This document shows positions 12,052 to 18,825 of a DNA stretch of 64,000 nt, piece by piece; position 1 is the stretch's first letter, and each line of letters begins with the position of its first letter. This DNA comes from Rebecca billardiae RCC1528. Its lineage: Eukaryota > Protista > Haptophyta. The position numbers and the translations under genes were made by a program. The stretch lies in assembly GCA_965240325.2 (NCBI GenBank), contig OZ251235.1, positions 744,001 through 808,000 of the forward strand. Reading direction: 5' to 3'. The notes beneath the pieces are model-generated. The model did not search any database. It was not told where the DNA came from and was given only the letters and a program-made list of their open reading frames with translations.

Positions 12052-14026
12052 TGATTAAACTTTTCTGAGGATAGCGCACCAGCAATTTCCCTTGACCGCC
12101 ATCCGGGCCGAAGTGGCGCAAAATGGCGGTTGCCCCGTTTGGGCGCCCTTCCGCGCCTTCGAGCGGCTCGTGCGCGTCGGGAAGTGCGCCGAAGCGTATC
12201 CGGAGCATGCTCCATCGACGCGTCGCACTGCCGGGCCCTCGCATGCGAGCCCATGCCGACGTCTGAGTGCGCCTCGCTGCGCACGGTACAGCTTGACGGT
12301 ACACGGCACGATTCGGCCGCGAGCAGCCTCGTGCGCGCGACCGAGCCAGAGGTGGTCGTCGAGAGTAGCACGAGCGGCGGCACACAAGCGGGCCTGGTCG
12401 TTGCCGAATATCTGACGCACCAATCGACCTCGCCCAGCGCCATCTGCTCGTTTGCGCACGTGTCGGAAAGAATGCGCAGCTGCCTGCAAACGCCGAGCGC
12501 GCAGATGAGGCGTGGGCGAGCGAAGGGGCGGCGAGGGCCGGCGCGTGCGCGCGCGTAAATTCGAGCCTCCCCATACGCATCGAAACACACCGCGCTCGCT
12601 CGTCGAGCTGCGCACGGGTATCGGTGCGCGCGCGCCAACGCGGCGCGCCGTGAACGCGCCCGGCGAATGCACACCTGCTCGCGCGCGCACGCGCACGTGA
12701 TGGACCGAGGAGGCCGCGCGAGCATGCGCGATGTGTCTGGATGGAGCGTGTAGGAGGTGTAGGCTGCGCTCCGCACGCGCTCCGCCACCGTGCACCGCGC
12801 TGCCCCTCGTCCACGCGATCGCCGCCGAGCCCAGATTCAAACGCGCGCGAGCGCTCGAGCGCACCTCCGGGCAGCAGTCGCAGCTATCGTGACGAAGGCG
12901 TGGCGAGAGGCAGATGTGCATGGCAAGTATCGTCATTGTGGTGCCCATCACGCGCACACTCTCGCGCATGCTCGCTGCACCACCTCGTCGCGCCCACGTG
13001 CAGCGCGCGGGGCGCGCTTCGTGCCCGGAGCAGCTGCGGAGCGGCTGCCGCGCGCAGTGCGCGCGGCGAGTAGGGCTCAGCCAATGGTCCGAGGGCGAGC
13101 CGGCCGAGCGTCGTGCGTGACGCACACGGACCTGGTGCAACGCCGCGTACCACTCGCAGCCACCATCGCGCCCGTACCAGCGAGCTGTGGCCGCCGCCGA
13201 CACCCCAAAGCAGCCCAGCCGTCAGCGCGCGACAGCCGACGAGCGTCAGCGCGCGACGCGCGCGTGCACCACCGTGATGAGCACGGATGAGCGCGCGCGC
13301 CCGTGTCGTAGCTCAGGTGGGGTCCCCCGATCGCACGCACCACCGCGCTGCCACGCCTTCGACCATCTTGTGTCACCACGCGGGCACACGCCGGGCAGGC
13401 GGCGGGGCAGCCCGCTCGGCAAACGGTCAGCGCGCAGCGAGGATGGAGTCCGGCGAGGGGCGACCGGAGTGTCCGGCGCGACGGAGGTGGTCCACGCCGT
13501 GGTCGCCGACGCGTTCCTCACCACCTCCGAGGCCGTGGTGGCCGCCCGGGAGAAGGAATGCTCCCAGTCGCACCCTTTGCAGTGCTCCTTTGCGCGTGCA
13601 CGCAACGGCGAGGAGCGGAAGCGTTAGAGGGCACTTTTTGTGCAGTTCAGGCGTTCTTTCCCCAAAATGTAGAATGCGCGGAGAAGTGCCCTCTAACGAT
13701 TTTCGTGTGCAGCCGTGCCGCGCGCGCGAGGAAGGCCACATGCGGCTCCTTGCACATCTGCTGCAGATCGGCTCGTGCTCGGCGAGCGCGGCGAGGAGGA
13801 AGGTGCGCGCTCGCGAGCTGGCGCACCTGGGAGTCCTCGCGGCCTCCGAGCAGAAAGAGCGCGTCGAGCGCAACGCCGCAGGTCGCACGGTCGCGATCTC
13901 GCGAGAGCGGTGGTGCGAGGGCGGGCCTCGCCATCGCGCGTTTCTGCGTCCAAACGCGGCCTCCGTAAAATCCGGATGGCGGTCAAGGGATTTTGCTGGT
14001 GCGCTATCCTCAGAAAAGTTTACACA
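12052..14026. mobile_element. Non-autonomous DNA transposon with 55-bp TIRs (TG...CA ends) inserted in a (TA)n tract
   Basis: 12052-12106 matches the reverse complement of 13972-14026 at 51/55 positions. Both ends abut TATATA runs. No recognisable transposase. Confidence 0.85.
13623..13697. repeat. Internal perfect 14-bp inverted repeat (gttagagggcactt ... aagtgccctctaac)
   Basis: Arms at 13623-13636 and 13684-13697 around a 47-bp loop. Confidence 0.85.
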
Positions 14027-14325
14027 TATATATTAACGACGTGGTATGCAACGGGCAGGCGTCAGAGTCAGCAAGCTGTAGCAGCAGATCGAGCAGCAGA
14101 GACAAACACCAGGATCAGCGCTCCATATAGAGTTATATAGTTATTATTCTAACTGGCGCGCGCAGAATCTCAGTATTCTCACAGAAGTGCCAAGTGGCCG
14201 GGGAATCGGACCGCCAGCCGGCCGAGGTGAGTGGTGACAGACGACCGTCATCTACAGTACTCCGACTACCCGTACCGGTCTCAGATAACACTTAACAGTC
14301 GCGTAGCTTTAAACGACAGATTGAC

Positions 14326-14347
14326 CAAAGGAATCAAGGGGGGTTTG
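14326..14347 (+). mobile_element. 22-bp micro-insertion with 7-bp TSD
   Basis: gattgac-[caaaggaatcaaggggggtttg]-gattgac. Confidence 0.7.
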
Positions 14348-14526
14348 GATTGACAGGCTAACTATACAGCAGATACTCATCATAGCGCAGTACTAAGTAC
14401 GACTGCTCATAGCTACGACACGCCGTACTCGTGGTAAGTAGTATACTCATTTCAGATATTTATAATAATAATATTATGATCGGCTACGCCGATCTTCGGG
14501 TAGTATTAGTAAACAACGAAGTTGAG

Positions 14527-15994
14527 GGCGCACGGCCCTACCAGTGGTAGTTGTCGCAGTTGTCGAGCGTTCTTCACCGAATCACGATGCGCGCGCCCGG
14601 CGCGTCGCCGTGCAGGAGGCGCGGGCGCGAGTAGCCGCTCCTTGCACGCCCTCGGCGTCTTCCCCTCCGAATGCGGGCCACGCGCGATGCGAGGTCGTCG
14701 AGAGCGCGCTGTCCGCCCACTGGAGCGCCAGCTCACGCGTGGACAGCGGCACGGGCCGCGGCCGCGGGCCGCCTGGGCGCACCGGCGCGCGCTCTCGACG
14801 TGCGCGCCGGGCACGATCAATCACGCCCGCCTCGAAGAGCCCGCCGATCACGCGCAAGATGAGCTCGCTCGCGTTCCGCGCCGCCGCCGCCGCCGCGCCC
14901 GCCGCGCCCGCCGCGCGAGCGGAGCGCAACCCTCGGCCGGCGGTCGGCGCGGCGCCCGCGCCCGCGCCCGCGCCGGGCGCCGGCGCGCACGTCTCACAGA
15001 GCAGGGTGTGGCGATCGCGCTGGGCCGGGGCGCGGCGGCGGGCGTGAGTGCGGAGAGCAGCGTGACTCGGAAGCACGGCTGCGAGTCGTCCGGCAGGTGC
15101 AGCACGTGCGCGCCGTCGCGCAGCGCGCCGCCCAGCCTCCCGCGCACGCCGAGCCCCAGCATGTGCGAGTGCCGCAGGTGCGGCCGCGCGCGCTCGCGCG
15201 CCGCGTCGAGCGCGCGCGCCGCCGCGCGGCGCGACAGAGTCAAGAAGCGTGTCTCGAGCGGCGCGGTAGAGAGCAGCGCGGAGTAGCGCACGCGCTCGCC
15301 ACCCTCAAGCACCGCCTCGTGCTCGTGCGCCCGCGAACAAGCGGCTCGCGCCGCCGTCCCGTTGCCGGAGCCCGACGTGATTGATGACGACGCGGCTGAG
15401 CCGAGCGAGCGCGGGCGCGCCCGCGCGCACGTCGCGGCCCCGCGCCACGAACCTGGCGGGTATTTTTCCAGCACTTCGTCCTAAGTGGGGAGCTCAAAAA
15501 ACGCCGTTTCGCTTCAAAGAATGATCAAAGATACCAGCTGGCACCCTACCTGTACGGGCGTTGGACGCGCGATGATACCAGGGCGCGCGGGAACGTCGAT
15601 TCAGGCTACCCGCGCAATAACATCTCGCGTCGCTCTGATGAATCTGAGGAGTGAACAGCTATCCGGAAAATAGTTCGATATCTCACCTTCTTTATCATCA
15701 GGTCAACACACGAATCTTGACTATCAGAAAGGTAGCTATTAAGATGTCTTTGTCCTATTTGATTTCGATTTCTTCTATTACTTACTATCCAAGGATTAAG
15801 GGGCAGTACAAACGCAATCATGAGCAGCGATATGCGGACTCAAATGCTGCGGTTTCACACCTAAATCCACCTACAAAAATCCCCCAAATCCTGCGCGCGC
15901 ATCCTCTTTTATTTGATTTGCGGAGCACGTGCGCCGCCCCCCCCCGGCTTTCGCTCACGCTCAGACCTTAACCTTTCGGGGGGGGCCGTGCGCC
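14527..15994. mobile_element. Possible degenerate TIR element containing a gene fragment
   Basis: 12-bp IR ggcgcacggccc (14527-14538) / gggccgtgcgcc (15983-15994) and an AT-rich right part; no TSD seen. Confidence 0.35.
14640..15330 (-). pseudogene. Frameshifted fragment resembling a eukaryotic UDP-galactopyranose mutase / flavin amine-oxidase-family gene
   Basis: GERVRYSALLSTAPL...LRHSHMLGLGVRG...LHLPDDSQPCFRVTLLS, then in another frame VIGGLFEAGVI...PVPLSTRELAL. The N-terminal GxGxxG FAD motif is absent. Confidence 0.5.
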
Positions 15995-16278
15995 ATAATA
16001 TACTGCTTCAGTCATCATAGTAATCGTCGATCGGACTCGCAGGATCTAGACCTAGTCGGTCAGCATCTGAATCACGACGCTTACATTACGCGCGCCACGC
16101 CGCCGGCGGCCCGCACCTCGGTGCGCCATAGCCATAGGTGATAGGTGCGGCAGGCCGGACTGGCCGCCTGACTTCGACGGAGTGGCAACTCTGTGCGGCG
16201 CTGGCACCTCGAGAGTCGAGTCCGGAGCAGATCCGCGGCCCGTGAGTGCGTGCCCGGCCTCGTCGGCAGTCTTAGCCG

Positions 16279-18516
16279 TCAGTCGTCGTACTCGTCCGGC
16301 GAGCCTTGATCGTCGGACCCATGAGTGTCACTCCCGGAAATGCTCTCGTCTCCCATCTCGTCATCATCCCAAGCCTCGGGCCAGGGGTCGTCGTCGCTGC
16401 CGAGGTCGGCCTCAGCAGCGCCAGGCGGGTACACTTGCTCGTAGAGCCGCTTGCTCGGCGCGCGCGCCGCCTGCGAGTGCACCTGAGACGTGAGCAGGTC
16501 GTCCAGCATGCCGTCGTCACCAGTCCACGCCTCGCGCACGACGTGCGCCGTCGACGGCGCAGGGGCCCCCGGGACTCCCCCTGGCATCGCGGACGCGCCG
16601 CCGGCGCCGCCAGCAGACTCCAGCGAGTAGCGAGCGTGCTCGATCGGGTCGTCCTCGTCCACGGCGGGGCCGCCTTCGCACACGTACAGCTCGCGGAGTG
16701 CGCAGAGGTTCGGCAGCGCGCGCACCGCCGCGTCCCCGACGCCGAGGCCCTCGAGGGAGAGCCGCGCGAGCGTGCGCGGCAGGAGCGCGAGGACCTCGGC
16801 GCCGAGGGGCAACCCGCCGGGCGGCGGCGGCTGCTTCGGATTGAGCTGCTTGAAATAGCCGCCCTTGTACTTGGGCTTGGGCTGCTTGTACACGCGCAGC
16901 TCGAGCGACTCGAGCGCCGGCGCGCCCGGCAGCACCTGCGACAGCACGAACGCCAGGTTGTCCGCCGCGTGGTCCGGGTACGTGGGCGTGGCCGCGTTGA
17001 GTCTCAGCGGCTGGCCTCTGTGCAGACCGCTGTGTGGGTTCGGCTCCGTGTCGTTGTGGTACTGCGCCCAGCGCATGCGCAGGCTGAGCGAGCGCAGCGC
17101 GCCGAAGAGCGGGCGGCCGGCGTGCCCGGCGCGCGCCGGCACTGGGTGCTCGCGGGCCCACTCCTTCGCCTCGCGCGTCTCGCGCAGCTGCGTCGTCTGC
17201 CGCCACACGTCGCCGCACTCGAGCCGCGCGCTCAGCGCGCGCAGGTTGGGCAACGCGCGGCCGAGCAGCAGCAGCGGCCGGAGCTCGAGGCCGTCCGGGT
17301 ACGGCGCCTTGTGCGCGAGCCAGCGCCTGTACCCGGCCCCGCGCACCACCAGCGCGCTGAGCGCGTGCAGCTCCGGCGCCACCACCTTGCCCTGCCGCAC
17401 GTCCCGGCCGCTCGCGCCGCCGCCGGCAAGCGCAGCCACCAGCCTGGCCGCGCTGTCCTCGCAGTTGAGCAGCGCCGTGGGCAGCGCGAGGGAGCGGAGG
17501 CGCGGCGTGGCGCGCAGCACGGCCTCCCACTCGTCGACGCCCAGGTACGACTCCTCCACGTGCAGCGAGAGCAGGCTGCCGAAGAAGGGCAGCTTCGCCA
17601 TCCCGAGCAGAAGGTTCTGCGGAGACGCGTTATGACCGCACTGCGCGCGCAGACGCACGGACGTCACGGCCGAGCCGAGGTGGCGCGCGATGGAGAGGGC
17701 GCGCTTGGTGTCGGGGCCGGTGGCGCCGAACGGCCAGAAGGCGAGCTCGTGCACCGCGCCCGCGGGGATCATCCCGCGGAGCCGCTGCAGCCCCTCGCTG
17801 CTCGGCCAGAAACGGTCGGGGAATTTGAACGCGCTCTCGCGCTTGTCCTGCTCGCGCATCTTGCCGCGCCGCGGCCGGTAGCCGCCGCTCACCTGCTCGA
17901 GGTGGCGGTCGCCGAATTCGAGCGAGGCCCAGAGCTCGGGGAACGCGCGCAGCGCGCGCCACTCCTTGCTCACGCACGTGACGACCGTCAAGCGCTCGAG
18001 CAGCGAGAGGTGGCCGCCGCTCGCGACGAGCACGAGCACCTGCAGCAGCAGCGGCAGCCCCGCGTCGGCCGGGACCGCGCCGTCGACGGCGGCGGCAACC
18101 TTGGCGAGCGAGGTGCTGAGTGCGCGGGCCTCCTTCTTCCGCTGCGCTTGCGCCGCCTTCGTCGCCGCCTTCTTCGACTCGCGCGCCGCCTCCGCGTCGA
18201 GCATGGCGCTCTTCAGGGCGACGAGCGTCGACCGATGCTTCGATTTCGGGATGTCGTCGCGGAAGACGATCTCGCTCCACGGCGACCGATCGACGCCGAA
18301 CGCCATGAAGCTCTGCTTCACACTGCCGCCGCCCTGGAGCGTGCTCGGCAGCACGCAGCCGAAGCACTTGAAATGGTTGTAGGCACCGTCAGTGCCTGTC
18401 GGCCGGTTGAAGCGCAACTCGCCCGGGTGCATGGCCTTGTGGCATGACTCGCACTTGCAGCTGCGCGGGCCGACGGTCTCGATGTAGTTGACCCCTCCGA
18501 GGTGCTTGAACTCCAT
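16279..18516 (-). CDS. PARP-type zinc finger + F-box + LRR-like protein (intronless)
   Basis: First ATG gives MEFKHL. RSCKCESCHKAMHPGELRF...HFKC is zf-PARP-like, LPLLLQVLVL...LERLTVVTCVSKEWRAL...LW is an F-box, and LxxLxL repeats plus an acidic tail follow. Confidence 0.75.
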   Translation of the reverse strand: MEFKHLGGVNYIETVGPRSCKCESCHKAMHPGELRFNRPTGTDGAYNHFKCFGCVLPSTLQGGGSVKQSFMAFGVDRSPWSEIVFRDDIPKSKHRSTLVALKSAMLDAEAARESKKAATKAAQAQRKKEARALSTSLAKVAAAVDGAVPADAGLPLLLQVLVLVASGGHLSLLERLTVVTCVSKEWRALRAFPELWASLEFGDRHLEQVSGGYRPRRGKMREQDKRESAFKFPDRFWPSSEGLQRLRGMIPAGAVHELAFWPFGATGPDTKRALSIARHLGSAVTSVRLRAQCGHNASPQNLLLGMAKLPFFGSLLSLHVEESYLGVDEWEAVLRATPRLRSLALPTALLNCEDSAARLVAALAGGGASGRDVRQGKVVAPELHALSALVVRGAGYRRWLAHKAPYPDGLELRPLLLLGRALPNLRALSARLECGDVWRQTTQLRETREAKEWAREHPVPARAGHAGRPLFGALRSLSLRMRWAQYHNDTEPNPHSGLHRGQPLRLNAATPTYPDHAADNLAFVLSQVLPGAPALESLELRVYKQPKPKYKGGYFKQLNPKQPPPPGGLPLGAEVLALLPRTLARLSLEGLGVGDAAVRALPNLCALRELYVCEGGPAVDEDDPIEHARYSLESAGGAGGASAMPGGVPGAPAPSTAHVVREAWTGDDGMLDDLLTSQVHSQAARAPSKRLYEQVYPPGAAEADLGSDDDPWPEAWDDDEMGDESISGSDTHGSDDQGSPDEYDD

Positions 18517-18633
18517 CGTCGCCTCAGCGCGCCTCGAGGATGCCCCCGCGGTCCCTGCACAACCGGTCGCCGCGGCCACTCCGTGACAGGGGCGCGGAAC
18601 TTGCCGCCCCGCAAAGACTTGACTTGAGCTTAC

Positions 18634-18650
18634 CCCCCTTGATTCCTTTG
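18634..18650 (-). mobile_element. 17-bp truncated micro-insertion with 7-bp TSD, same family as 14326
   Basis: agcttac-[cccccttgattcctttg]-agcttac; the reverse complement equals the first 17 nt of the 14326 element. Confidence 0.65.
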
Positions 18651-18712
18651 AGCTTACTGTACTGGGTTGCACACTTCAGCGATTCACGTACTGTACTACT
18701 GTACTGTACAAT

Positions 18713-18734
18713 CAAAGGTCGTTCTATTCCTTTG
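18713..18734. mobile_element. 22-bp micro-insertion with CAAAGG/CCTTTG ends and 7-bp TSD
   Basis: gtacaat-[caaaggtcgttctattcctttg]-gtacaat. Confidence 0.7.
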
Positions 18735-18777
18735 GTACAATCGTCATCGGAGTCGTTGATTCCCCGGTCATGATGCT

Positions 18778-18825
18778 ACAGTTTACTAAGAATAAGAGAC
18801 GCACACAGCTCAGGCAGGCGAGATC
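18778..18825 (+). repeat. ~45-bp dispersed repeat, copy 1
   Basis: acagtttactaagaataagagacgcacacagctcaggcaggcgagatc; near-identical copies at 20945 (+) and 59975 (-). Confidence 0.9.

Follow-up and report, generated by a model that had tools for sequence, protein, structure and literature searches.

The systems closest to the one described here are the excision footprints of the Drosophila P element, the shorter footprints of Tc1/mariner transposons, and the small or internally deleted elements that accompany a longer parent. Drosophila P transposase makes an unusually long, 17-nt staggered cut (PMC7776569; PMC10983969), and P elements are known for local hopping, a preference for promoters and NHEJ repair of their donor sites (PMC7776569). 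End joining leaves a footprint of overhang sequence between the target duplications (PMC3878927), an arrangement also seen at Tc1/mariner donor sites, where 2-3 nt per side are retained and the duplication is TA. MITEs carry both functional ends, measure tens to hundreds of bp and form homogeneous families, and like internally deleted elements (KP-type P derivatives, zebrafish Pdre) they have termini and duplication length in common with a parent element. To our knowledge, long-stagger cleavage has so far been measured only for the Drosophila P element.

In this work, we analysed a window of 64,000 nucleotides (744001-808000 of contig 18) in a genome of 72 Mb, 41 contigs and ~68% GC, which contains three micro-inserts of 17-22 bp with perfect 7-bp direct repeats on both sides. 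On the basis of sequence comparisons, we regard these micro-inserts as very probably the excision footprints, that is, the end-joined donor sites, of a cut-and-paste transposon family of the P superfamily. What appears to be a mobile unit of 20 bp is thus replaced by a well-understood object, the excision scar of a transposon. The phenomenon itself is already known, and the algal P-type family is new; the added value lies in a large natural record of scars and in an unusual two-gene layout.

As in the Drosophila P system, the family here consists of cut-and-paste elements with a P-type RNase H transposase, as much as ~17-20 nt of the inverted end persists between the duplications at its donor sites, non-autonomous copies with internal deletions are present, and events are clustered and lie near gene starts (for P, PMC7776569). 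It differs from Drosophila P in its inverted ends, which are ~158 bp or longer instead of 31 bp, in a transposase of 1322 codons that does not itself include the C-terminal domain and in which a THAP domain is not detectable, in a second, convergent gene that encodes a predicted P-transposase C-terminal-domain fold, and in its host, a GC-rich alga-type protist and not an animal. Furthermore, the cleavage geometry is here one that we infer from the scars. Unlike Tc1/mariner footprints, those described here retain up to 20 nt and lie within a 7-bp duplication; unlike MITEs, with which they share the link to a parent element, its termini and its duplication length, the micro-inserts are unique and mostly one-ended products of repair. 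The features in the window are as follows.

14319-14325, no strand: left 7-bp target-site duplication of scar 1, GATTGAC (window sequence and scan)
14326-14347, plus strand: insert of scar 1, 22 nt, made of 19 nt of the subfamily-a tip (through the G-run plus T) followed by the terminal 3 nt of the opposite tip, TTG
14348-14354, no strand: right copy of the scar 1 duplication, GATTGAC
18627-18633, no strand: left 7-bp duplication of scar 2, AGCTTAC, the last bases of which overlap the tip by microhomology
18634-18650, minus strand: insert of scar 2 (locus L011), 17 nt of one tip (at most 20 nt with microhomology) and 0 nt of the other
18651-18657, no strand: right copy of the scar 2 duplication, AGCTTAC
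18706-18712, no strand: left 7-bp duplication of scar 3, GTACAAT
18713-18734, no strand: insert of scar 3 (locus L125), 22 nt, two-ended, with CAAAGG (6 nt) from one tip, a filler of 7 nt and 9 nt of the other tip, ATTCCTTTG
18735-18741, no strand: right copy of the scar 3 duplication, GTACAAT

All three inserts that the first-pass annotation had placed between perfect 7-bp direct repeats, starting at 14326, 18634 and 18713, are thus found in the window sequence, and its view that they arose from independent insertions agrees with the duplications, which differ between the three sites. Aligned to the inverted end of subfamily a, the inserts correspond to nt 1-19 (scar 1), 1-17 to 1-20 (scar 2) and 1-6 plus 1-9 (scar 3), the range for scar 2 being due to the microhomology between the tip and the end of its duplication. 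Inserts 1 and 2 form a perfect inverted match of 19 nt. We considered whether this pair, with its outer limits at 14326 and 18650, could represent the ends of one composite element of 4.3 kb, and rejected this because each insert has its own, different 7-bp duplication. A scan across the window for any 7-mer followed by an insert starting with CAAAG or ending with CTTTG and by the same 7-mer again returned only the three inserts and two chance matches in GC low-complexity sequence.

Long elements with the same termini and 7-bp duplications, a possibility already raised in the first-pass annotation, do exist elsewhere in the genome, where some of the matches to the tip motif are arranged as inverted pairs and fetching these pairs revealed complete elements. 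The intact copies measure 1.9-6.4 kb, have long inverted ends that start with CAAAGGAATCAAGGGGGG or close variants of it, and are flanked by perfect 7-bp target duplications in nine of nine cases. They fall into four subfamilies, a to d, which differ by a few bases in the tip. Subfamily a has copies of 1.9 and 3.2 kb with inverted ends of ~158 bp, subfamily b at least six near-identical copies of 3.17 kb, and subfamily c copies of 3.0 kb with fragments of both genes described below (ORF1 and the transposase gene). Subfamily d is represented by one copy of 6.4 kb (L111), with no long open frame and no similarity to the transposase or to ORF1. The transposase gene that had also been anticipated was detected as a full copy in subfamily b only.

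When the whole genome was searched with the Pfam model of the P-type RNase H domain, this gene was the single match: an open frame of 1322 codons on contig 21, scoring 31.9 bits against PF21787 (TNP-like_RNaseH_N; cut-off 24.6; hmmscan). The GTP-binding insertion domain, PF21788, reached 15.3 bits, below its cut-off of 24.8, at residues 1063-1132, which is the expected position. PF21789 and PF12596 had no match on the genome, and their controls were equally silent, so these blanks mean little. A Pfam search at E values up to 0.1 detected no THAP domain in the protein; DNA binding may instead fall to a C-x6-C ... C-x2-C motif that is conserved in subfamilies b and c. Among PDB sequences, the only one similar to the transposase is that of the Drosophila P element transposase (6p5a_A from entry 6p5a), at an E value of 0.2 that is not significant alone, with an alignment that spans the PHLIK, QxFS and EHxFG motifs, which we take to be conserved in P transposases. 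The nearest clusters in the ESM Atlas all belong to THAP9/P transposase families (0.92-0.95). A word-based protein search with the catalytic region found no relatives, and an NCBIfam search with the transposase gave no match.

Because of the Pfam match, the motif alignment with 6p5a and the ESM Atlas clusters taken together, the transposon family is assigned to the P superfamily. In the Repbase classification, target duplications in this superfamily range from 7 to 8 bp. Those of Drosophila and zebrafish are 8 bp long (P-element review), unlike the 7 bp found here.

Several copies preserve parts of the transposase gene. The 3.17-kb copies of subfamily b have a 304-aa 'ORF2' that hardly differs from the first ~290 residues of the protein, and a DNA alignment identifies these copies as internal deletions missing 3447 bp of the transposase gene; the subfamily-c copies hold diverged fragments of the gene that are ~35% identical. 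At the sensitivity of our search, the catalytic part is single-copy in the genome. The copy on contig 21 that encodes it belongs to subfamily b, is without the last 11 nt of its right end and has an LTR retrotransposon nested between ORF1 and the transposase gene; it looks immobile, though its frame is open. The scars in the window come from subfamily a, for which the genome yielded no specific transposase.

The second gene of the elements, the conserved ORF1, encodes a protein of 561 or 577 aa that is 28% identical between subfamilies a and b, persists as fragments in subfamily c, and lies convergent to the transposase gene. ORF1 had no match in Pfam, in a word-based protein search, in a profile search of PDB sequences or in Foldseek against the PDB. 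Its 131 homologues, recovered by an exhaustive profile search, are all unnamed and come from metagenomes and from a set of marine protist transcriptomes. AlphaFold predicts an all-helical structure (pLDDT 79), and ORF1 is therefore not a catalytic RNase H protein. When the conserved domain was folded alone (pLDDT 91) and compared with ~48,000 PDB representatives using VIA-align, the top match was the C-terminal domain of the P element transposase (6p5a_B, residues 617-734), with Z = 10.1, an r.m.s.d. of 3.0 Å and 118 of 118 residues aligned; the next match had Z = 6.3. The model of full-length ORF1 has the same top match (Z = 8.9), and its N terminus bears a weak resemblance to homeodomains (Z 5.5-6). 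The catalytic protein itself ends ~95 residues past the EHxFG motif and has no similarity to ORF1.

One possible reading of this layout, which we put forward tentatively and would not yet favour, is a two-component P-type transposon, in which a protein with the RNase H and insertion domains but without the C-terminal domain would act together with a separate, convergently encoded protein of 561 aa, homeodomain-like at its N terminus, that is predicted to supply it. If this were true, the split enzyme and the scar census together would indicate that the long-stagger cleavage of P elements is ancient, common to algae and animals, and feasible by a split enzyme. The split gene layout would also offer a handle on the role of the C-terminal domain of P transposases.

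The micro-inserts had been described in the first-pass annotation as members of a family, and the terminal motif is indeed far more frequent in the genome than its control: there are 74 matches to an 18-mer of the tip with up to two mismatches allowed and 129 to a degenerate 17-mer, and the reversed control of each has 0. We fetched the context of 87 distinct matches to the terminal motif, of which 13 contain a full inverted end and 74 are stubs. Nearly all stubs extend 16-20 nt from the tip and end at or just past the G-run. In 22 of the 74 cases the 7-mer in front of the stub recurs exactly downstream of it, compared with 1 of 74 when the 7-mer lying another 20 nt upstream was used as a control, and with one mismatch permitted these numbers rise to 40 and 7. 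About half of the stubs are without a clean second duplication and have partial duplications or flanking deletions; in many of the stubs where the 7-mer does not recur, the 3' part of the duplication adjoins the stub, which is what a joint that had eroded the flank would produce. A pattern designed for two-ended remnants (9 nt of one tip, 0-30 nt, then 6 nt of the other tip) had 18 strand matches versus 1 in the control, and nine of the 13 loci with this pattern, scar 3 of the window among them, have perfect 7-bp duplications. Overall, roughly a hundred scars stand against some twenty intact copies in the genome.

Retention of the tip was parsed in 29 scars with perfect 7-bp duplications, after the removal of two intact elements in which the duplication recurs by chance inside the end. 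No scar retains more than 20 nt of tip on either side, and the mode of retention is 17-19 nt. From the second side, one-ended scars have a further 0-6 nt and two-ended scars 5-13 nt. The inserts range from 14 to 53 nt, with one or two tips and varied filler, and most of them hold one tip only.

These observations can be accommodated by a simple sequence of events. Insertion of an element would create the 7-bp target duplication, and the transposase would later cut the element out, with the 3' strand cleaved at the boundary of the element and the 5' strand within the inverted end, ~17-20 nt from that boundary, as by Drosophila P transposase; the element tip would thereby remain on each donor flank as a 3' overhang. 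End joining by the host would then keep one overhang nearly whole and trim the other (scars 1 and 2), or keep short pieces of both together with filler (scar 3), the end product in either case being a tip remnant between two copies of the duplication. The two overhangs would have the same sequence, with G-run ends, and so would be unable to pair with each other, which may account for the usual outcome, the filling-in of one and the trimming of the other.

A stagger such as the 17 nt of P elements would explain stubs of 17-20 nt, and the sharp ceiling at this length suggests, independently of biochemistry, that a distant algal relative of the P element also cuts with a long stagger. The end of the stubs coincides with the conserved G-run, which, if it affects resection or synthesis, could give the impression of a fixed cleavage site. 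The ratio of scars to intact copies points to frequent end-joined excisions. Indeed, the scars would serve as a record of the alga's end joining as well, in which one overhang survives and is filled in, whereas the other is cut back. Of the origins offered in the first-pass annotation, the stereotyped excision scar is the one borne out, given that full elements with the same termini and the same duplication length exist and that the inserts are pieces of their tips; the 7-bp stagger that it proposed agrees with the duplications at the window sites, at all nine intact copies and in the 29 scars, and nothing points to its suggestion of oligonucleotide capture.

An alternative origin of the same remnants would be abortive, template-directed gap repair, in which the gap left by excision is refilled from a sister or homologous copy, starting at both ends and aborting after a few nt, so that the inserts would be recopied sequence and not overhangs. 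Internally deleted copies are clearly present, both as the 3.17-kb elements lacking 3447 bp and as the 3.0-kb elements with fragments of both genes, and a few longer two-ended remnants with filler, of 33-53 nt, also fit it. The distribution of retained lengths nevertheless makes this route improbable as the source of the scars: it predicts broad lengths, usually with both ends represented, whereas the 29 clean cases stay within 20 nt per side and most consist of 17-19 nt of one tip with 0-6 nt of the other. Between ~50 nt and 1.9 kb, moreover, the 87 contexts hold no intermediates except a composite of 1.2 kb (L093).

Less probable still is that the 17-22-bp units are a minimal mobile element, a micro-MITE moved by the transposase, with each copy a fresh insertion. 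In its favour, each unit has its own 7-bp duplication, two of the units in the window are 22 bp long with short inverted ends, and the duplications follow the target preference of the family. This preference is palindromic, GTnnnAC, and common to intact copies and scars (38 duplications, nine from intact copies and 29 from scars). Positions 1, 2, 6 and 7 are G, T, A and C in 61%, 76%, 66% and 50% of the duplications, respectively, in a genome in which A and T each account for ~16%; every one of the three duplications in the window matches at least one GTnnnAC half-site. The units are, however, not copies of one another, as their lengths, their one or two tips and their varied filler attest, and most are without the second end that cut-and-paste transposases need for synapsis. 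They do not form a homogeneous multi-copy family with both terminal repeats, as MITEs do, and their many damaged duplications are expected from repair and not from insertion. The minimal mobile unit considered in the first-pass annotation therefore falls away, since the inserts differ in make-up and do not have the paired ends that a transposase needs.

The genome as a whole is composed of GC-rich coding DNA and AT-richer spacers, which marks it as eukaryotic, and all three inserts lie within AT-richer non-coding DNA, with 48% GC at 13950-14520 and 55% at 18517-18800 compared with 68% overall. Their position in such DNA near gene starts would suit a promoter or terminator motif with fortuitous flanking repeats, a reading to which we give next to no credence, as it is refuted by the controls (0-1 matches for the reversed patterns against 74-129), true transposons end in exactly this motif, and a perfect 7-bp flanking repeat is expected by chance only about once in 16,000 per site.

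With the inserts read as excision footprints, their arrangement along the window can be compared with the behaviour of P elements. An open frame of 797 codons on the minus strand, presumably a gene, has its first ATG at 18516, and scars 2 and 3 are found ~120-220 bp upstream of this ATG, presumably in the promoter. The three scars fall within 4.4 kb; with about one scar per 600-700 kb across the genome, so tight a cluster of three would, by a rough estimate, be expected less often than about once in a hundred genomes. This clustering suggests repeated local hops or a preferred landing zone, and three scars within 4.4 kb of spacer would fit the local hopping and promoter preference of P elements. 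Other close pairs of scars are found on contig 20, where they are 2.1 kb apart, and on contig 14, where they are 4.8 kb apart.

The parent transposon family, a P-type cut-and-paste element, carries two genes in convergent orientation, present in copies on contig 21 and contig 7. The features concerned are the following (L-numbers denote genome loci fetched around terminal-motif matches or element copies).

L109:148-1830, plus strand: ORF1-type gene of the parent element, 561 aa
L115:5846-9811, minus strand: P-type catalytic gene of the parent element, 1322 codons
Contig 21:1527000-1542999 (L115/L116; also L042): copy with the full transposase gene

The 561-aa protein is all-helical. In structure, its conserved domain comes closest (Z 10.1; runner-up 6.3) to the C-terminal domain of 6p5a_B, the Drosophila P transposase, a domain that the 1322-codon catalytic protein does not have. 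Together, the two proteins may constitute a split transposase.

The full transposase gene was found in a single copy only, the one on contig 21. Its frame is still open, and the copy holds a nested LTR retrotransposon, with a 1599-codon frame that includes a retroviral polymerase SH3-like domain, and lacks the final 11 nt of its right inverted end. We consider this copy probably immobile. Among the subfamily-a copies, those of 1.9 kb (L032 and L033) are non-autonomous and foldback-like: in each, the two halves repeat one another in inverted orientation over about 850 bp. What they have in common with the 3.2-kb copy is only about 190 bp per end.

Scars, the short tip remnants read as excision footprints, and intact copies share a palindromic preference for GTnnnAC in the 7-bp target (38 target duplications). 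In subfamily-d-type stubs (L049, L053, L061, L063, L070, L072, L075 and L096, among others), the G-run at or just after which almost all stubs end is 6-8 G long and often directly followed by T; extant d elements have 4 G, then A. The source of these scars seems to be a d-like subfamily that is not represented by any intact element in the set examined; alternatively, the extra G could stem from untemplated addition. One subfamily-b stub occurs with identical flanks at five loci (L084, L090, L094, L098 and L103), and appears to be a scar that lay within another repeat and was duplicated together with it. At two further loci, L083 and L009, the stub is directly followed by TTAGGG-like filler (TTAGGGTTT and TTAGGC).

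A spacer upstream of scar 1 (window 14326-14347) contains one additional feature, a possible terminator or small hairpin element.

Window 13623-13697: perfect 14-bp inverted repeat, arms GTTAGAGGGCACTT and AAGTGCCCTCTAAC, about 47 nt apart
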